From the sequence record ON529851.1: 64,000 nucleotides of DNA; one strand, 5' to 3'. The notes beneath the pieces were generated by a model. It was given only the letters and a program-made list of their open reading frames with translations, did no database searches and was not told where the DNA came from. Below, one piece after another: positions 1-11,041 of this stretch. The position numbers and the translations under genes were made by a program. Within the stretch, counting starts at the first letter, position 1, and each line of letters starts with the position of its first letter.

Positions 1-20
1 ATCCGCCACACAGGAAAAGG

Positions 21-95
21 TGGCCCACCCAGGAGCGCTCGCATCTCCGTCTCGGGGATTTCACTCCCGTGCTAATCTGTCTCAGCTATGAGTGG
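21..95 (-). tRNA. tRNA-Phe(GAA)-like, atypical
   Basis: Acceptor CCACTCA/TGGGTGG-G-CCA, D arm GCT/AGC, anticodon loop with GAA but 8 nt long or bulged, irregular T loop (ATGCGAGCG). Confidence 0.6.
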
Positions 96-96
96 A

Positions 97-180
97 TGGT
101 GGGAAGGGAGAGAATTCGCACTCTCACAGCTTGCGCGGGGGATTTACAGTCCCTTGGGCTCACTCGTGCCCAGCCTGCCC
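97..180 (-). tRNA. tRNA-Tyr(GTA)
   Basis: Cloverleaf, AGGGA-CTGTAAA-TCCCC anticodon arm, long variable arm, encoded CCA. Confidence 0.92.
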
Positions 181-246: not shown

Positions 247-281
247 GAAAAGGCCCGCCTGGTGGAAACCAGGCGGGCCTT
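247..281 (-). terminator. Intrinsic terminator (attenuator) upstream of the Tyr/Phe tRNA array
   Basis: 13-bp stem AAGGCCCGCCTGG/CCAGGCGGGCCTT followed by a T run on the minus strand. Confidence 0.8.
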
Positions 282-312
282 CGAAACTTGGGTGTTCTAA
301 GTGGGTATCAGA

Positions 313-408
313 TTAAATCTGCGTCCCACCATCGCCCATGCACGAATGGCCCGCCCGGTTAAACCGGACGACCTGAATCTGCTGCACGTTGTTGCGATAG
401 GTGAACAT
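313..408 (-). CDS. Candidate leader peptide MFTYRNNVQQIQVVRFNRAGHSCMGDGGTQI (31 aa)
   Basis: ATG lies at the predicted TSS of the 416-444 promoter; composition biased to F/Y/R/N/V/Q/I; contains an antiterminator arm. Confidence 0.72.
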   Translation of the reverse strand: MFTYRNNVQQIQVVRFNRAGHSCMGDGGTQI

Positions 409-415
409 GAGGAGA

Positions 416-444
416 CATTTACTACAGGTGGCGGGCAGTGTCAA
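416..444 (-). promoter_or_regulatory. Housekeeping-sigma promoter TTGACA-N17-TAAATG
   Basis: Perfect -35 and 17-nt spacer; TSS about 409, giving a leaderless mRNA. Confidence 0.7.
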
Positions 445-2983: not shown

Positions 2984-3871
2984 TTACAAAGTCACGATCA
3001 ATCGGGGATTGAAGTTCGGGTTCAGTTCATGCCCGACATAGCCGCGCGGATTGCAGATCACGCGGGTCTCGCCGATCTGGTAGTCGCTGCTGTCATGCAT
3101 ATGACCATGGACCCACAGGGCGGGCTCCCATTCCAGCATCAGCGGCTCCAGCCGCGAGGCGTAGGCCGGGTTCAGCGGCGATCCCCGATAGCGATGGTGG
3201 CTCGACTGCTCCGACGGCGCATGGTGAGTAATCACCACGGTCGGGCCGTCATGCGGAACCCGTAGCGTTTCGGCCAGGAAGAACCGGCTCTCCAGGTGAA
3301 GGCGCCGCGTGTCTTCCGCCGTCAGGCGCTGCTGCTGCTTCAGTTCGATCTGCTGATAGTCGTTCATATCGGACTGGGCGTGCCGGATCGACAAGGGCCA
3401 GGTCCCGTAGAGATCGAAGTCGGTCCACAGGGTGGCGCCGAGGAACCGGACGTCGCCCATATGGACCTGCTCGTTATCCATGACGAAGACGCGGGCGGGC
3501 GCCAGTTCGTCCGCCTTGGCCTTCATCTTCTCGATGTGGCGGTGGTAGCGCCGCTTGCCGTAGAACTCGTGGTTGCCCGGCACATAGAGGCAAGGGACGT
3601 CAGGGAAATGACGCGCCAGCCAGATCACGCCGACGACGCCCGTCGCCAGGTCGCCGGCGGCGATGACCAAATCGATCTCGTCCGCCGTCGGCGCCGTCCA
3701 GGTGCGCCGGTCCATGCCGCCGAACTCCAGATGGAGGTCCGACAGGATCAGGGCGCGCAAGGGCCGTCGTCCGGACCGGCGCTGCGCCAGGCCGGCTTCG
3801 ATGTCGGCCTGCATGTCGGCCGCAGCCGCCACGGTGAACTCCATCTCAGCCTTGCTCCACTCGGTCTCCAT
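2984..3871 (-). CDS. Calcineurin-like metallophosphoesterase
   Basis: Motifs SDLHLE, AGD, VPGNHE, THHAP and HGHMH. Confidence 0.92.
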   Translation of the reverse strand: METEWSKAEMEFTVAAAADMQADIEAGLAQRRSGRRPLRALILSDLHLEFGGMDRRTWTAPTADEIDLVIAAGDLATGVVGVIWLARHFPDVPCLYVPGNHEFYGKRRYHRHIEKMKAKADELAPARVFVMDNEQVHMGDVRFLGATLWTDFDLYGTWPLSIRHAQSDMNDYQQIELKQQQRLTAEDTRRLHLESRFFLAETLRVPHDGPTVVITHHAPSEQSSHHRYRGSPLNPAYASRLEPLMLEWEPALWVHGHMHDSSDYQIGETRVICNPRGYVGHELNPNFNPRLIVTL

Positions 3872-4695: not shown

Positions 4696-4784
4696 TGGCG
4701 GATGGGGCAGGGATCGAACCCGCGTAACCCTCTCGGGTGTCGACCGCTTAGCAAGCGGCTGCCTTACCTCTCGGCCACCCATCC
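4696..4784 (-). tRNA. tRNA-Ser(GCT)
   Basis: Cloverleaf, loop TT-GCT-AA, long variable arm, G73-CCA. Confidence 0.93.
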
Positions 4785-4791
4785 GGGGTGA

Positions 4792-4876
4792 TGGCGGTGC
4801 GCCAGGGAATCGAACCCTCAACCTTGCGGTCGGCGACGGTTTTCAAGGCCGCTTGTCCCCATGGACGCTGCACACC
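4792..4876 (-). tRNA. tRNA-Ser(TGA)
   Basis: Loop CT-TGA-AA, long variable arm, G73-CCA; irregular D arm. Confidence 0.85.
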
Positions 4877-4881
4877 AAAGA

Positions 4882-4972
4882 TGGCGGACGGCACGCGATT
4901 CGAACGCGTGGGACCCAGGGGGTCCGCCTGCTTTCCAAGCAGGTGCCTTAAGCCGGGCTCAGCCAGCCGTCC
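4882..4972 (-). tRNA. tRNA-Ser(GGA)
   Basis: CCTGC-TTGGAAA-GCAGG, long variable arm, CCA. Confidence 0.93.
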
Positions 4973-4977
4973 GGTGT

Positions 4978-5195
4978 TGGTGGAGGCGAGGGGATTCGAA
5001 CCCCCGTAGACGCCGAACCCCCGCATTACCGAGGGCCGATCTCAGGTTTAGAACGCGTGTGCCGTCCTGACCATCTTCCGCAGGCCAGGAGGTCTATCGT
5101 AACGACCCCGTCGATCGGTTGCCTCTGCGTCCCGGATTTACCCGGACCGTTGTTCTGTTCCACGGTGCTCATGCCGAAACCCGAGCGACGCCCCC
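4978..5195 (-). ncRNA. Compact one-piece tmRNA-like RNA (218 nt)
   Basis: GGGGGCG/CGCCTCC-A-CCA acceptor with G3:U70, canonical T arm, no anticodon arm, tmRNA-like 5' end GGGGGCG..GGGTTTCGGC, internal GCA-started frame at 5122-5048. Confidence 0.62.
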
Positions 5196-5205
5196 GTGAA
5201 GGAAA

Positions 5206-5293
5206 TGGAGGATGGTGTGGGATTCGAACCCACGGAACCTTGCGGTCCTCCGGCTTTCGAAACCGGCGCGATCGGCCACTCCGCCAACCATCC
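5206..5293 (-). tRNA. tRNA-Ser(CGA)
   Basis: CCGGT-TTCGAAA-GCCGG, long variable arm, CCA. Confidence 0.92.
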
Positions 5294-5300
5294 AGAACAG

Positions 5301-5489
5301 TCAGGCCGAGGCCGGACTGTAGTTGTCGATGTCGTCGACCCGGATCGCCGTGCCCGCCGCAATCTGGCGGTCGGCGCTCAACAGGTCGGCGACCAGGTCG
5401 TCGGCCGAGACGGCGGTGCCGAGGGTGGCGAACTTCACGTTCACCAGGCGGCCGTCCGCAAACATCTCGTCGATCGCGGCGCGATCCAT
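5301..5489 (-). CDS. Hypothetical protein (62 aa) within the tRNA array
   Basis: ATG with SD AAAGGT; fills the gap between tRNAs. Confidence 0.7.
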   Translation of the reverse strand: MDRAAIDEMFADGRLVNVKFATLGTAVSADDLVADLLSADRQIAAGTAIRVDDIDNYSPASA

Positions 5490-5522
5490 GATAGACCTTT
5501 CTGCCGGACGCGCCGGCGGTGA

Positions 5523-5593
5523 TGGTGGAGACAGTGGGGCTCGAACCCACCAAGGCGTCCTTGCAAAGGATGCCTGCGCCCTGCGCTGTCCCC
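5523..5593 (-). tRNA. tRNA-Ala(TGC), minimal D loop
   Basis: GGGGACA/TGTCTCC with G3:U70, loop TT-TGC-AA. Confidence 0.85.
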
Positions 5594-5630
5594 GTAGGGG
5601 TTGATCGTCAGCCATGCTGACAACCATTGT

Positions 5631-5706
5631 TGGTCCTGGCACTCAGATTCGAACTGAGCCATCGTGCTCCACAAACACGCGCCTCCACCGCAGAGGCTTT
5701 ACCAGG
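5631..5706 (-). tRNA. tRNA-His(GTG)
   Basis: CGTGT-TTGTGGA-GCACG; A73 and no encoded G-1. Confidence 0.88.
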
Positions 5707-5708
5707 GT

Positions 5709-5796
5709 TGGTCGCGACGACAGGGATCGAACCTGCCCGGCCTCTCGGCCACTACCACCTCAAGGTAGCGCGTCTACCAGACTCCGCCACGTCGCG
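5709..5796 (-). tRNA. tRNA-Leu(GAG)
   Basis: CTACC-TTGAGGT-GGTAG, long variable arm. Confidence 0.92.
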
Positions 5797-5805
5797 ATCG
5801 AATGT

Positions 5806-5891
5806 TGGTGCCCGACCCCGGACTCGAACCGGGACGCCACGAGGGCCACGCCTTTTGAGGGCGCTGTGTCTACCGTTCCAGCCAGACGGGC
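5806..5891 (-). tRNA. tRNA-Leu(CAA)
   Basis: GCGCC-CTCAAAA-GGCGT, long variable arm. Confidence 0.92.
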
Positions 5892-5900
5892 AGTGAAAGA

Positions 5901-5987
5901 TGGTGCGGGTGAGAGGATTCGAACCTCCCCGGCACAAAGGCCACGAGTACCTGAGACTCGCGCGGCTACCAACTTCGCCACACCCGC
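5901..5987 (-). tRNA. tRNA-Leu(CAG)
   Basis: CGAGT-CTCAGGT-ACTCG, long variable arm. Confidence 0.92.
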
Positions 5988-5992
5988 ATTTT

Positions 5993-6074
5993 TGGAGAAC
6001 CCTGGTGGAGTCGAACCACTTGCGCCTGGATTAAAAGCCCAATCCCGGCCACCCGGATTTAACGCTCAAGGTCC
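5993..6074 (-). tRNA. tRNA-Lys(TTT), enlarged D region
   Basis: TTGGG-CTTTTAA-TCCAG; acceptor GGACCTT/AGGGTTC with wobble pairs. Confidence 0.72.
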
Positions 6075-6087
6075 CCTAAAATGATGT

Positions 6088-6178
6088 TGGTGAACGTGGT
6101 CGGACTCGCACCGACGATGAAGGTTGTAACCTAACGGGATTAAGAGCCCCGGCCTCTCGCTACTGAGGTGACACGTCC
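6088..6178 (-). tRNA. tRNA-Lys(CTT) with long variable arm
   Basis: CGGGG-CTCTTAA-TCCCG, 19-nt variable region, T loop TGCGAGT. Confidence 0.8.
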
Positions 6179-6216
6179 AAAACTGTTGTTCTTCTCCTGA
6201 AGACTTGATATGTGCA

Positions 6217-6287
6217 TGGAGCCGGCGGACGGTGTCGAACCGTCCCATGTCCACTACGAAAGGTCAGCCCTGCCACCAGGCGCCGGC
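6217..6287 (-). tRNA. tRNA-Thr(CGT)-like, degenerate
   Basis: GCCGGCG/CGCCGGC acceptor (Thr-type G1,C2,C3), good T arm, loop TT-CGT-AG with two stem mismatches. Confidence 0.55.
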
Positions 6288-6295
6288 GTTGTTGT

Positions 6296-6366
6296 TGGTG
6301 CCAAGGGAGGGAGTCAAACCCTCGCTGAACCCATACCAAGGGCTCGACCGATCACCCGGCCTTGGC
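6296..6366 (-). tRNA. tRNA-Thr(GGT)
   Basis: AGCCC-TTGGTAT-GGGTT; short D arm; CCA. Confidence 0.8.
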
Positions 6367-6374
6367 GTTGAAGA

Positions 6375-6449
6375 TGGTCGGAACACCGGGATTCGAACCT
6401 GGGACCCCTAGCTTCCCGAGCCAGTGCGCTACCGCTGCGCTACATTCCG
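6375..6449 (-). tRNA. tRNA-Pro(GGG)
   Basis: C1:G72, CTGGC-TCGGGAA-GCTAG. Confidence 0.92.
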
Positions 6450-6458
6450 ATTTGAAGA

Positions 6459-6535
6459 TGGTCGGCGAGGGAGGATTCGAACCTCCGATCCCTCCGACCC
6501 GAACGGAGTGACTTACCAGACTTGCCCACACGCCG
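6459..6535 (-). tRNA. tRNA-Pro(CGG)
   Basis: C1:G72, CTCCG-TTCGGGT-CGGAG. Confidence 0.93.
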
Positions 6536-6544
6536 ATGGAAACG

Positions 6545-6578
6545 AAAAAAGACCCCGGAGGCTATGCGCCTGGGGCCT
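6545..6578 (-). terminator. Intrinsic terminator (attenuator) about 10 nt upstream of the first tRNA of the array
   Basis: AGGCCCC-AGG/CCT-CC-GGGGTCT stem followed by TTTTTT. Confidence 0.75.
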
Positions 6579-6649
6579 GAAACAACTGCTGTTTTGGGAT
6601 TCAGCAGGTGATCGGCCCCTTAAGGGCGCCTCACCTGCGAGGACTGGAC

Positions 6650-6784
6650 TTAGGGCCAGCCTTCCAAGGAGACGCCACCGGTGGTGGGGGACTTCGGCGA
6701 CAGTTTCGTCGGCGCATGCGCGAGCGTCGACAGCGCCGTGGCGGCGGTCGAAAGATGGCTCAGCTTGTGCGACAAGGTAGTCAC
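6650..6784 (-). CDS. Candidate leader peptide MTTLSHKLSHLSTAATALSTLAHAPTKLSPKSPTTGGVSLEGWP (44 aa, GTG start)
   Basis: Codons 2-35 encode only T,L,S,H,K,A,P; lies between the promoter and the terminator of the tRNA array. Confidence 0.75.
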   Translation of the reverse strand: MTTLSHKLSHLSTAATALSTLAHAPTKLSPKSPTTGGVSLEGWP

Positions 6785-6836
6785 GATGAAGGTCCAGTCC
6801 GAAGAAGGAGCGCGAATGCGCTGTGATGAAGTCTGA

Positions 6837-6865
6837 TCTCTACAGGAAGCTTGAGCGTATGTCAA
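6837..6865 (-). promoter_or_regulatory. Promoter TTGACA-N17-TAGAGA of the main tRNA array
   Basis: Perfect -35 and 17-nt spacer. Confidence 0.7.
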
Positions 6866-6930: not shown

Positions 6931-6959
6931 CTTGTGCCAGGATCGGCGGCGATCGTCAA
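6931..6959 (-). promoter_or_regulatory. Promoter TTGACG-N17-CACAAG
   Basis: Shares GCCGCCGATCCTGGCAC with the 8206-8234 promoter. Confidence 0.55.
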
Positions 6960-7062
6960 CAGGGAAAATGCACGCGCGCGGCCGAGGGGGAGCGGAAGAC
7001 CGCGCGCGTGCCCGGCAGACCGTCGGGGGACGGGGCCTGGGTCGTCGGGGGACGGGGAGGGG

Positions 7063-7600: not shown

Positions 7601-7675
7601 TGGCGAGTCCAAGGGGAGTTGAACCCCTCTCTCCACCGTGACAGGGTGGTGTCCTAACCGATAGACGATGGACCC
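7601..7675 (-). tRNA. tRNA-Asp(GTC)
   Basis: CCACC-CTGTCAC-GGTGG, G73-CCA. Confidence 0.94.
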
Positions 7676-7706
7676 GTATCAGAGGGTCGATCCGCAGGAA
7701 GATGCT

Positions 7707-7784
7707 TGGAAGGGCGCCGGAGACTCGAACTCCGCTCACTTGGTTGAAAGCCAAGTATCCTGCAAACCGCTAGACGAGCGCCCC
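7707..7784 (-). tRNA. tRNA-Glu(TTC)
   Basis: CTTGG-CTTTCAA-CCAAG, CCA. Confidence 0.9.
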
Positions 7785-7818
7785 ATAAAGCACAGGGCGT
7801 CGAACACGAGAGCCGCGA

Positions 7819-7884
7819 TTAGGCGGCGGTCGTATCTCGGCCCTGGAAGGCCTCTCGTTCGTAGCTGGTCAGACGGTAGATCAT
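7819..7884 (-). CDS. Candidate leader peptide MIYRLTSYEREAFQGRDTTAA (21 aa)
   Basis: ATG at the predicted TSS of the 7891-7919 promoter, directly ahead of the Glu/Asp tRNAs. Confidence 0.5.
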   Translation of the reverse strand: MIYRLTSYEREAFQGRDTTAA

Positions 7885-7890
7885 TTGGTG

Positions 7891-7919
7891 CTTGTAACAG
7901 AACTGTCGGTGGGTGTCAA
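7891..7919 (-). promoter_or_regulatory. Promoter TTGACA-N17-TACAAG
   Basis: Perfect -35 and 17-nt spacer; leaderless. Confidence 0.68.
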
Positions 7920-8095
7920 GAAGGACGGCGAAACTTTTTGGCCTTTCGGGCGGGTCGATCCTCATCGACTTCAGGCTCGGCCGCGTCCCTGCCCATCCAC
8001 AGGGCCGCGAGAAACGCGGGCGGACCCATCAGGGCTTCCAAGCGCTTCAAGGCCCGGTCGTTGGCCGCCAGGAAGGCGTCGCCGTATTCAAGCAT
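7916..8095 (-). CDS. Hypothetical protein (59 aa, MLEYGDAF...)
   Basis: SD GAGG upstream of the ATG. Confidence 0.6.
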   Translation of the reverse strand: MLEYGDAFLAANDRALKRLEALMGPPAFLAALWMGRDAAEPEVDEDRPARKAKKFRRPS

Positions 8096-8156
8096 GGAAC
8101 CTCGGAGGATACAGGGGCAGGCTTCAATGGACGGCGTTTGACCGCGCCCATCTCGG

Positions 8157-8198
8157 TGGTAGCAGCACACCAGCCCTGCTCGGCTGGCCCCGCCCCTC
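8157..8198 (-). ncRNA. Second candidate CCA-ending minihelix RNA (42 nt)
   Basis: Starts at the predicted TSS of the 8206-8234 promoter; GCCAGCC/GGCTGGT hairpin; ends CT-A-CCA. Confidence 0.35.
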
Positions 8199-8205
8199 GT
8201 TCCGG

Positions 8206-8234
8206 CGTGTGCCAGGATCGGCGGCAAAGGTCAA
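8206..8234 (-). promoter_or_regulatory. Promoter TTGACC-N17-CACACG
   Basis: 17-nt identity with the 6931-6959 promoter. Confidence 0.5.
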
Positions 8235-8431
8235 GGGTAAAATCGACGGGTGACCGCTACCGGCCTCGCCTGCTGGCCCGTCCCAGCGCCTGACCTTCTC
8301 GACGCGACGCCCTTGTGGGCGTTATGGCCTTCCCGTCCGAAGACAGACGCCGCGAAGGGTCAGCGGGACCGCATGATCGTCAGCCGCACGGCCAGCGCAG
8401 CGAGAGGTTCAGAGGCCTGTCCCGGAAAGAG

Positions 8432-8506
8432 TGGAGCGACTGGTCGGAATCGAACCGACGTCCCCAGGTTGGAAGCCTGGTGCTAAGGCCCCTCAGCTAC
8501 AGTCGC
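8432..8506 (-). tRNA. tRNA-Gly(TCC)
   Basis: CCAGG-CTTCCAA-CCTGG, U73-CCA. Confidence 0.92.
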
Positions 8507-8520
8507 AGTATAAAACAAGG

Positions 8521-8596
8521 TGGAGCGACTCTCGGGACTCGAACCCGACCCTGCGCGTTGGCAACGCGTTGTACCCACCCATAATACGTGAGTCGC
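8521..8596 (-). tRNA. tRNA-Gly(GCC)
   Basis: Loop TT-GCC-AA, U73-CCA. Confidence 0.88.
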
Positions 8597-8608
8597 ATGG
8601 TTAATAAA

Positions 8609-8690
8609 TGGCACGGGTGGAGGGATTCGAACCCCCGACATATGCTGGTTTTGGAGACCAGTGCCTTGAGCCAGACTTGGCGACACCCGT
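8609..8690 (-). tRNA. tRNA-Trp(CCA)
   Basis: CTGGT-CTCCAAA-ACCAG, G73-CCA. Confidence 0.9.
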
Positions 8691-10430: not shown

Positions 10431-11041
10431 CAGAGGAACCGCAGGGAAACGACATGGTGTTGAGGGGTAGGGGACCAGGGAGACACCGTCCGCACCTGCT
10501 CCACGATCATGTTCGACGTCGTCGGCGTGGTCTCGATCGTGTAATGCCCCGGCGCCAACGAGAGATCAAAACCCGGCTCCAACGTGAGGACGCCATTGAT
10601 GGCGAAGGCGTGCGTTACGATCATGACGCCTTTTGCATCGAGAAGGCGGGCCGTCAGCGTGCCCGTCCCGCCTGCGCCGCGCACCCGCATCGCGATCAAC
10701 TGGGCCGGCTCCAGCAGAGTGATCGAAGCGGTCCGCACCACGGAGCCGAACGGGAGCAGGCTCACTTCCAGGGGCGCACATCCGGGCAGAACCCACAGCT
10801 TGCGATCCATGGGTCGGCCGCCGCCGCCGGCCTGTAGCGGCCCGTGCACGACGCCGCCCTCCGTCATCAGGCGGACGTCGTCGCCGCCGAGCGTGCGTTC
10901 GGGCAGCAGGGGCACGTCCATATCGAACGCATCCGTCCCGACGCCCAGGATGCGGGCCGCCGGATCGAGCGTCAGTTCGCCCGGCGCGCGCGGCTGGGGC
11001 GGGTTGGCCTCATAGGGCGTCAGGTAAATGGTGTCAGGCAT
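10430..11041 (-). CDS. Putative fibre/filament subunit (203 aa)
   Basis: TGATG overlap with the giant gene; APGELTLDPAARIL motif. Confidence 0.7.
   Translation of the reverse strand: MPDTIYLTPYEANPPQPRAPGELTLDPAARILGVGTDAFDMDVPLLPERTLGGDDVRLMTEGGVVHGPLQAGGGGRPMDRKLWVLPGCAPLEVSLLPFGSVVRTASITLLEPAQLIAMRVRGAGGTGTLTARLLDAKGVMIVTHAFAINGVLTLEPGFDLSLAPGHYTIETTPTTSNMIVEQVRTVSPWSPTPQHHVVSLRFL

Follow-up and report, generated by a model that had tools for sequence, protein, structure and literature searches.

A probable leader-peptide attenuator in front of a tRNA gene block of Brevundimonas phage Marchewka and its relatives

Why phages carry transfer RNA (tRNA) genes is debated, with codon compensation, host tRNA decay and evasion of tRNA-cleaving defences as the explanations on offer, and we know of essentially nothing on how phage tRNA genes are controlled. 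What, then, decides whether such genes are transcribed? The question is raised in concrete form by the minus strand of the window analyzed here, which corresponds at 100% identity to the first 64,000 bases (1-64000) of ON529851.1, the 348-kb genome of the Brevundimonas jumbo phage vB_BpoS-Marchewka (Dolichocephalovirinae; hereafter Marchewka). A block of tRNA genes (block C) stands there directly behind a small unit made of a putative promoter, a 44-codon open reading frame (ORF), several hairpins and an intrinsic terminator, together referred to as leader C. An original prediction had taken this unit for a codon-matched leader-peptide attenuator. Our analysis of the sequence and of modelled RNA folds leads to the same central reading, namely that leader C is probably a ribosome-mediated (leader-peptide) transcription attenuator gating the tRNA block behind it. 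This reading is supported by an ORF whose amino-acid set is conserved across the subfamily, by a second leader (leader D) matching a second tRNA block (block D), and by the trp-type logic seen in modelling of leader D. In Marchewka and all Caulobacter-phage relatives examined, the two blocks each lie behind their own promoter, mini-ORF and switchable terminator. The positions predicted for the promoter, ORF, hairpin and terminator of leader C all hold on the minus strand when checked against the sequence (Table 1).

The first clue lies in the composition of the ORF. Codons 2-35 (the core) had been said to encode only Thr, Leu, Ser, His, Lys, Ala and Pro, the amino acids of the tRNAs in block C, and all 34 of them indeed fall within this set. 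Taking the set from the tRNAs and leaving the ORF out of its definition, we searched all six frames of the window for uninterrupted runs of it; the core is the longest, with 34 codons versus 21 for the next, and a run of this length has an expectation of 2e-7 under an independent and identically distributed model. The original prediction had also counted an exact cognate codon for 13 of the 15 anticodons. The count is right but does not exceed chance, since resampling the synonymous codons with the phage's own codon usage, with the peptide fixed, gives 10.9 ± 1.2 matches (P = 0.075). The excess of codon diversity in leader C over its expectation is marginal (18 versus 14.9, P = 0.046). Because 13 of 15 lies within what synonymous resampling yields, the match between leader and tRNAs is placed at the level of the amino acid, or tRNA family, and not demonstrably at that of the codon.

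We then followed the ORF through the relatives of Marchewka. Bambus is 99.9% identical to it, Papperlapapp, Domovoi and Kabachok are 95-96% identical, and Kikimora and Gurke about 85%; more distant are Bajun (207 kb), the Caulobacter phages of the phiCbK, Rogue/BL10, Colossus/PW and Bertelyvirus groups, and four environmental contigs. Leader C was compared in Marchewka, the six phages closest to it and Bajun, together with phiCbK, Karma, Ccr2, BL57, Rogue, BL10, Colossus, PW, BL47, BL9 and the four contigs. Every relative examined has the ORF at the corresponding site, 113-126 nt ahead of the first tRNA-Pro, and it is annotated as a coding sequence (CDS) in Bajun, phiCbK, Rogue, BL10, BL47 and BL9. 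Altogether 19 distinct peptides of 38-47 sense codons were obtained from five phage lineages, and they drift considerably in sequence (TTLSHKLSHLSTAATALSTLAHAP..., TKLSHTLSKLKTATTASLSLAHAP..., FALSHNSLSTKAASPASLSLAPLATATKP..., TFSTHKPSTLKPATGAASLAHASLL...). The amino-acid bias is kept in the relatives, as had been expected of a genuine leader: of the 646 residues at positions 2-35, 614 are members of it, compared with a six-frame background of 0.456. Moreover, about 22 of 24 replacements, counted manually from the alignments, stay within the set, versus a fraction of 0.47 expected (P ~5e-6). Replacement inside the set despite drift is what one would expect of regulatory codons and not of a folded or binding peptide.

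Does the ORF have to be translated at all? The region could be a structured but untranslated 5' leader of the tRNA precursor, acting in processing, in stability or as a small RNA, with the open frame being incidental. The complete 287-nt leader C folds strongly (z -5.0 versus shuffles), its hairpins are conserved, TTGTCGCACAAGCTGAGC at the ORF start is invariant in 8 phages with synonymous sites included, and the Shine-Dalgarno (SD) sequence of Marchewka is weak, all of which would suit such an RNA. The pattern of change speaks for translation instead. Insertions and deletions within the ORF are all multiples of three and those in the flanks are of 1-2 nt; the start, GTG in the Brevundimonas phages and ATG in the Caulobacter phages at the homologous position, and the stop are kept across lineages whose nucleotide sequences no longer align; and restriction to an amino-acid set is meaningless for an untranslated RNA. 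An SD-like GGA, AGGA or GAGAG lies 5-12 nt ahead of the start codon in all lineages. In addition, nothing in Rfam matches the leader strand even at E=1. We regard an untranslated leader as scarcely credible. A longer ORF of 71 codons from TTG 6865 was also considered as the coding unit and was rejected; it begins within the -35 box, and a 1-nt insertion in Kabachok breaks its frame.

The RNA of leader C can form four successive and mutually exclusive hairpins (0:1, 1:2, 2:3 and 3:4), which recur in every lineage with different sequences, and this topology is well supported. In Marchewka their energies are -30.5, -22.5, -24.2 and -16.0 kcal/mol, respectively, and in seven of seven lineages 0:1 is more stable than 1:2 and 2:3 is more stable than 3:4. 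It follows from this energy ladder that the 5'-most hairpin free to form should dictate the outcome. The original prediction had codons 37-40 pair with the hairpin's 5' arm; this pairing is confirmed as the 0:1 hairpin (z -3.1 in Marchewka), whose equivalent recurs in all eight lineages tested (z -3.1 to -5.3). The proposed pairing of GGGGCC with GGCCCC proved to be part of the 2:3 antiterminator, in which GGGGCC and CUGCUG pair with CAGCAG and GGCCCC; it forms when segment 1 is unavailable, and with segment 1 sequestered segments 2-4 fold as the antiterminator in seven of seven lineages. Another proposed pairing, between GGACTGGAC in the 5' untranslated region (UTR) and GTCCAGTCC after the stop, exists in Marchewka and Bambus only and was dropped as a conserved element, the post-stop half being replaced in Papperlapapp, Domovoi and Kabachok and both halves differing in Kikimora and Bajun. 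GTCCAGTCC belongs instead to the apical hairpin around the stop codon, and this hairpin (helices 3-4) has compensatory changes of the anticipated kind among Marchewka, Papperlapapp, Kikimora and Bajun.

The antiterminated form is the minimum-free-energy structure of the complete leader C, and RNAalifold on eight Brevundimonas-type leaders gives it independently. With structures taken from Marchewka, related sequences and a MAFFT alignment that is poor for Bajun and the relative L057, 89.6% of the alignment cells are paired in the terminated fold (36-58% when the structure is slid) and 77.9% in the antiterminated one (35-47% when slid). Ten pairs of the antiterminated fold have changed on both sides, and its covariation score was reached by none of 500 shuffles. 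The terminator ends 10 nt before tRNA-Pro (6535), a distance that leaves no room for a promoter, and the tRNAs of block C must therefore be reached through it. This terminator is conserved among the Brevundimonas phages and in the phiCbK group, and the phiCbK genome paper places rho-independent terminators, predicted with TransTermHP, at exactly the three corresponding positions, that of leader C included. As for the promoter, its TTGACA and TGTA.AG blocks are invariant in 7 phages and the flanks diverge; the same geometry (TTGACA, 17 nt, TAnnnn) is found 5' of leader D and of a further candidate, leader B. A simple scan for promoters and terminators flagged neither of the two elements of leader C, because it disallowed bulged stems and required T at position 6 of the -10 box.

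Leader D was found via phiCbK, whose next tRNA block also follows a promoter, a mini-ORF and an annotated terminator. Its core in Marchewka, YRNNVQQIQVVRFNR, has 15 residues drawn only from Y, R, N, V, Q, I and F, and is the longest run of the block D set in the six frames of the window (15 versus 12). Block D crosses the origin, and its remaining tRNAs (Ile, Val, Gln, Asn, Arg and Arg) stand at the genome end; its Tyr, its Phe and both Arg tRNAs are called at relaxed threshold only. Leader D is conserved in the whole subfamily, and about 14 of its 17 replacements (manual count) stay within the set, versus a fraction of 0.23 expected. Five lineages have exactly the same arrangement of the promoter (TTGACA, 17 nt, TAnnnn, 7 nt, ATG), and since the ATG lies only 7 nt past the -10 box, the mRNA is probably leaderless. 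The amino-acid sets of leaders C and D are disjoint. In the split codon boxes CAN, AAN and TTN, the choice of His, Lys or Leu over Gln, Asn or Phe stands at 76 to 8 in leader C and at 12 to 71 in leader D (8:0 and 1:9 in Marchewka alone). Base composition can't explain the two sets, because the leaders make opposite choices of residue within the same boxes.

These data also bear on the idea that the mini-ORFs are ordinary small protein genes, each served by a promoter and a terminator of its own, with the tRNAs made by leaky read-through and the match being a coincidence of low complexity. Several records do annotate hypothetical proteins here, the N-terminal LSH and central LSLAHAP motifs of leader C are fairly conserved, and leader peptides can act in trans, as is described for peTrpL of S. 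meliloti (PMC7298713). Nevertheless, two unrelated peptides with disjoint sets each match their own block, and replacements preserve the set and not the residue, so that residues vary freely within it. No match was obtained in a protein search with the single leader C peptide, and a profile search of 5.8 billion proteins returned only copies at the same genomic position, i.e. no homologue in another context. Furthermore, the 3' parts of the ORFs double as segments of conserved alternative hairpins, and in leader C a mere 10 nt separate the terminator from the first tRNA. We consider ordinary protein genes a very improbable explanation.

To see how a ribosome might set the switch, leaders C and D were modelled with a ribosome footprint, leader D by partition function with a footprint of 28 nt. 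In leader D, segment 1 (codons V-V-R, GUCGUCCGG) pairs with segment 2 (codons R-A-G, CCGGGCGGGCC). Because segment 2 nearly copies the 3' arm of the terminator (CCAGGCGGGCC), it can pair with the 5' arm (GGCCCGCCUGG) of that 12-bp GC stem. The modelled probability of the terminator is ~1 without a ribosome, falls to 0.05 in Marchewka, 0.08 in Kikimora, 0.00 in Bajun and ~0.3 in Colossus with the A site at codons 10-12, and is back to ~1 from codon 16 on. The dip is weak in phiCbK, and the predicted switching is thus clear in four of five phages. In these models leader D has the layout and the logic of a textbook trp-type attenuator. For leader C, hairpin 1:2 has a modelled probability of ~0 in Kikimora, Bajun and phiCbK (three of seven phages) until the A site is past codon 34-36, and of ~0.9 thereafter. 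In Marchewka, Papperlapapp, Colossus and BL47 this hairpin is predicted at any ribosome position, and in these phages the model rests on the order of synthesis.

Leader C thus presents a conserved upstream ORF, matching codons, an intervening terminator, and an antiterminator exclusive of both the terminator and an upstream hairpin that overlaps the ORF, as attenuators do; it departs from the classical members in that the genes downstream are tRNAs and not genes of amino-acid biosynthesis or aminoacyl-tRNA synthetases. We propose that it would work as follows. Host RNA polymerase would start at the TTGACA promoter and a ribosome would translate the 44-codon leader, the first 34 sense codons after the start being read by the tRNA families encoded just downstream. 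A ribosome keeping pace with the polymerase would cover segment 0 while segment 2 emerges; 1:2 and then 3:4 would form, and transcription would stop 10 nt before tRNA-Pro. Slow decoding at any of the 34 codons would make the ribosome lag and let 0:1 form first, whereupon segment 2 would be free to capture segment 3, no terminator would form and the tRNA block would be transcribed. As a lag at any of these codons is enough, the mixed-codon run would add up the supply of charged tRNAs from seven families into a single signal. The tRNA product would relieve the signal directly, giving a negative feedback in which expression is driven by demand and limits itself. Leader D would do likewise for the Tyr/Phe/Val/Ile/Gln/Asn/Arg block by the simpler trp-type design; of the two, only leader C is predicted to read through when left untranslated. 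For leader C, the direction of switching is drawn from the energy ladder, the order of synthesis and the analogy with leader D. What the sequences themselves show is the anatomy, its conservation, evolution within the amino-acid set and the alternative pairings; that the leader is translated, that read-through depends on stalling and that a physiological signal triggers it is what we infer.

An attenuator of some other logic has to be weighed here, one that answers to global ribosome availability or coupling, or in which translation to the stop promotes read-through. The equilibrium profile of Kikimora is consistent with it, being reversed relative to our proposal (terminator probability 0.87 with the ribosome upstream and ~0 at codons 36-44). 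Moreover, untranslated leader C folds in the read-through form, so that any failure of translation would give read-through, and a ribosome near the stop of leader B is predicted to melt its hairpin in the manner of pyrBI. A sensor of coupling, however, needs no codons confined to the amino acids of the block behind it, nor a confinement kept through about 36 replacements in two leaders; in addition, leader D modelling is classical in four of five phages, and the energy ladder favours the classical logic in all lineages. We therefore hold such an alternative to be unlikely, and stall-dependent attenuation to be the better account of leader C.

Several points weigh against this account. First, the full-length equilibrium modelling of leader C, with the ribosome masked as the original prediction had suggested, came out as predicted in Papperlapapp, phiCbK and Colossus but not in Marchewka, Kikimora and Bajun. 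Among the seven phages it is inconsistent overall, agreeing in 3-4 of them, with Marchewka noisy, Kikimora reversed as given above, and the terminator of Bajun out-competed at every ribosome position. That 1:2 forms in four phages wherever the ribosome stands belongs here as well, as do the weak SD of Marchewka and the non-significant match of exact codons. Second, the leader C "terminators" of Colossus, PW and BL47 are without a good U-tract, and the z-scores of single duplexes are modest (-1.1 to -3.4). Third, Thr is the commonest residue of leader C, and yet the Thr tRNAs of Marchewka are non-canonical. Fourth, the leader was predicted to co-vary with the tRNA set, and a single case of this was found. 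In the Bertelyviruses tRNA-Trp lies at the end of block C and not in the first block (BL47, 3747-3820; BL9, 10911-10984), and theirs is the only leader C with a Trp codon inside the core (..LASWPASS..). Co-variation has just this one case because block composition is otherwise almost invariant in the subfamily, and in the same phages 5 of the 34 residues of leader C are out of the set.

The leader C core consists of 42% C and 24% G, with a C/G ratio of 1.6-1.8 in all lineages, and resembles a Rho loading site in its composition. Thr, Ser, Ala and Pro all have NCN codons, which may be the simple reason for this richness in C. Exposed behind a stalled ribosome, such C-rich and G-poor RNA could recruit Rho and oppose read-through, which would also tell against our proposal.

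Leader-peptide attenuators are familiar from the trp, his, thr, leu, ilv and pheA operons of Enterobacteria. The principle has been described in general terms (PMC1183508) and, for alphaproteobacteria, in the reports on S. meliloti trpL (PMC6614838, PMC7298713). Leaders C and D share with the biosynthetic systems a short ORF with regulatory codons, overlapping hairpins and an intrinsic terminator and, as proposed, a ribosome whose position picks the hairpin and whose slow decoding leads to read-through. Leader D shares in addition the layout of 1:2, 2:3 and 3:4 and default termination when untranslated, and the biosynthetic thr and ilv leaders, too, mix two or three amino acids. Unlike those systems, the phage leaders would regulate tRNAs and not enzymes, and the product would relieve the stall directly and not via amino-acid synthesis; an unbroken stretch of 34 codons in leader C, or of about 15 in leader D, would report on seven families simultaneously; segment 0 is an addition of leader C, whose untranslated RNA is predicted to read through; and the element is viral, with two or three units partitioning one tRNA region. 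Leaders C and D thus differ from known attenuators in their tRNA cargo, in how many amino acids they would sense, in belonging to a virus and, for leader C, in having an additional segment.

Two other known systems come close. T-box riboswitches sense tRNA charging and control read-through of a terminator, and are the known means of coupling translation-supply genes to tRNA status. They differ in that translation plays no part, the RNA itself binding uncharged tRNA by way of a specifier codon and the T-box sequence, and they occur mainly in Firmicutes on aminoacyl-tRNA synthetase and amino-acid genes. A T-box was considered for leader C and rejected, with no match to the T-box or any other Rfam family on the leader strand. 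In pyrBI-type control, or terminator occlusion near a stop codon (PMC4824070), a ribosome close to the polymerase blocks the terminator, which may apply to leader B. This type senses coupling or the supply of nucleoside triphosphates and not codon-specific decoding, and it leaves the set-restricted leaders C and D unexplained.

No description of attenuation of tRNA genes was found in a full-text literature search, whose coverage leaves out most subscription journals, and the original statement that none was known for tRNA gene arrays thus stands within that coverage. The phiCbK genome paper annotates the terminators and some of the mini-ORFs without discussing them and has zero occurrences of "attenuat"; the Brevundimonas phage paper has no mention of attenuation or leader peptides, and the phiCbK RNA-seq paper none of tRNAs or gp335. 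Phage tRNAs are known to counter tRNA-targeting defences (PMC10264068, PMC11464382, PMC11555353). These studies give a rationale for a supply of tRNAs that follows their loss; by their titles and abstracts and by our searches, they concern the function of the tRNAs and not the control of their expression, and describe no such regulated expression. Typical targets of the nucleases, namely Lys, Tyr, Asn, His and Arg tRNAs, are present among blocks C and D. It is conceivable, and we put it forward as a tentative idea, that the phage splits most of its tRNAs into separately sensed blocks, each polled by its own leader, in an inducible and self-limiting response to the loss of host tRNAs. If so, the arrangement would be a built-in damage sensor for counter-defence, responding to tRNA loss from host shut-off, starvation or anticodon nucleases, and the principle may extend to other tRNA-rich phages.

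If the attenuator reading is correct, leader C would be the first case known to us of leader-peptide attenuation governing tRNA genes, a rare multi-input attenuator with seven amino-acid families in one leader, and direct evidence that a phage treats tRNA supply as a regulated quantity. It would explain why the tRNA region is cut into blocks by units of promoter, mini-ORF and terminator, why terminators were annotated directly before tRNAs in 2012, and why the region has several conserved "hypothetical proteins" of 39-45 residues. phiCbK, a phage of the genetic model Caulobacter crescentus, carries these elements too, and the idea is directly testable there.

Table 1. Coordinates in the window of leaders B, C and D and of the tRNA blocks behind leaders C and D
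Feature	Position	Strand	Description	Basis
Leader C promoter (putative)	6837..6865	minus	-35 TTGACA 6865-6860, 17-nt spacer, -10-like TAGAGA 6842-6837	sequence
Leader C 5' UTR	6785..6830	minus	small hairpin AGCGC-AUUC-GCGCU and weak SD-like GGA	fold
Leader C ORF	6650..6784	minus	44 sense codons and stop; GTG 6784, TAA 6652-6650; MTTLSHKLSHLSTAATALSTLAHAPTKLSPKSPTTGGVSLEGWP	frame kept in all relatives
Leader C regulatory core	6680..6781	minus	codons 2-35; only Thr, Leu, Ser, His, Lys, Ala, Pro	composition
Segment 0	6664..6677	minus	UGGCGUCUCCUUGG, codons 36-40; partner of segment 1	fold
Apical hairpin of 0:1	6642..6661	minus	around stop codon, GGCUGG...CCAGUC	fold, RNAalifold
Segment 1	6624..6639	minus	CGCAGGUGAGGCGCCC; partner of segment 0 or segment 2	fold
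Segment 2	6602..6620	minus	AGGGGCCGAUCACCUGCUG; partner of segment 1 or segment 3	nearly invariant in Brevundimonas phages
Hairpin 1:2	6638-6604	minus	-22.5 kcal/mol	fold
Segment 3	6568..6591	minus	CAGCAG...GGCCCCAGGC; partner of segment 2 (antiterminator, -24.2 kcal/mol) or segment 4	fold
Intrinsic terminator 3:4	6545..6577	minus	stem 6577-6551, -16.0 kcal/mol; U6 6550-6545	fold
tRNA block C	4696..6535	minus	Pro x2, Thr-like x2, Lys x2, Leu x3, His, Ala, Ser x4, one small CDS, tmRNA-like element	ARAGORN default/relaxed, Rfam, alignment
Leader D unit	248..444	minus	putative promoter TTGACA 444-439, -10 421-416, ATG 7 nt later; ORF 408-313 MFTYRNNVQQIQVVRFNRAGHSCMGDGGTQI; terminator 279-252 and U4	sequence, fold
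tRNA block D, start	1..180	minus	Tyr-GTA 180-97, Phe-GAA 95-21, Val-GAC from 7 across origin	ARAGORN
Candidate leader B ORF	7819..7884	minus	MIYRLTSYEREAFQGRDTTAA; 35 nt before tRNA-Glu and tRNA-Asp	peptide and spacing conserved in all lineages

Block C had been credited with 15 tRNAs, a fair count of which five are non-canonical. Default ARAGORN calls ten in 4696-6535; Ser-TGA, Thr-CGT and Lys-TTT are called by ARAGORN at relaxed thresholds only, and Lys-CTT (6091-6178) scores 38.6 bits, above the Rfam tRNA threshold. At the predicted Thr-GGT (~6290-6365) no program calls a tRNA, neither ARAGORN (default and relaxed) nor Rfam. This Thr-GGT-like gene aligns to the canonical tRNA-Thr(GGT) of Bajun, Rogue and two environmental relatives and keeps the anticodon loop TTGGTAT, and it is probably functional, not decayed, because it is conserved between Marchewka and Kikimora with a compensatory change in the T-stem. 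It has a 3-bp anticodon stem, and the Lys-CTT gene is 88-91 nt long. The non-canonical genes lie at 6217-6365, 5993-6178 and 4792-4876 (minus), some of them being called below the default threshold only. Five tRNAs missing from the original prediction (Trp, Gly, Gly, Glu and Asp; ARAGORN) are located at 7601-8690, upstream of leader C, and leader C therefore governs one block and not the whole array.

Two other elements were found inside block C. A CDS of 62 codons, MARCHEWKA_00180 (5301-5489, minus), lies between tRNA-Ala and tRNA-Ser, a position kept in all Brevundimonas relatives. Between tRNA-Ser(CGA) and tRNA-Ser(GGA) there is an element of 132 nt (4978-5109, minus) with a tRNA-like acceptor stem, T-arm and CCA end and without a normal anticodon arm. 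It scores 31.9 bits with the Rfam model of transfer-messenger RNA (tmRNA; threshold 47) and 21.8 with that of permuted tmRNA, and relaxed ARAGORN reads it as an intron-bearing tRNA. The relatives have a gap of roughly equal length between the same two tRNA-Ser genes.

The candidate leader B stands apart from leaders C and D. Its hairpin of -30 kcal/mol encloses the stop codon, and its U-tract is weak in Marchewka. Leader B was considered as a leader matched to Glu and Asp; its Glu and Asp codons are conserved, not enriched, making up 3 of 20 residues, which is the background level, so that the match is unproven and the logic is ambiguous. Scans of IMG/VR with the conserved 17-mer gave chance matches only, and those with the leader D pattern gave the known isolates Colossus, Karma and PW besides chance matches.

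Upstream of leader C, the preceding CDS ends at a GC-rich palindrome, GCACGCGCGCGG...CCGCGCGCGTGC followed by ATTTT (6954-7011, minus). Directly after it comes a second conserved promoter-like site (TTGACG, 17 nt, CACAAG), which precedes the leader C promoter by about 95 nt. The records of Papperlapapp and Kabachok annotate a CDS on the opposite strand over the leader region, and Papperlapapp alone has an insertion of 107 nt (alignment columns 187-296) in the stretch from this second site to the leader C promoter.

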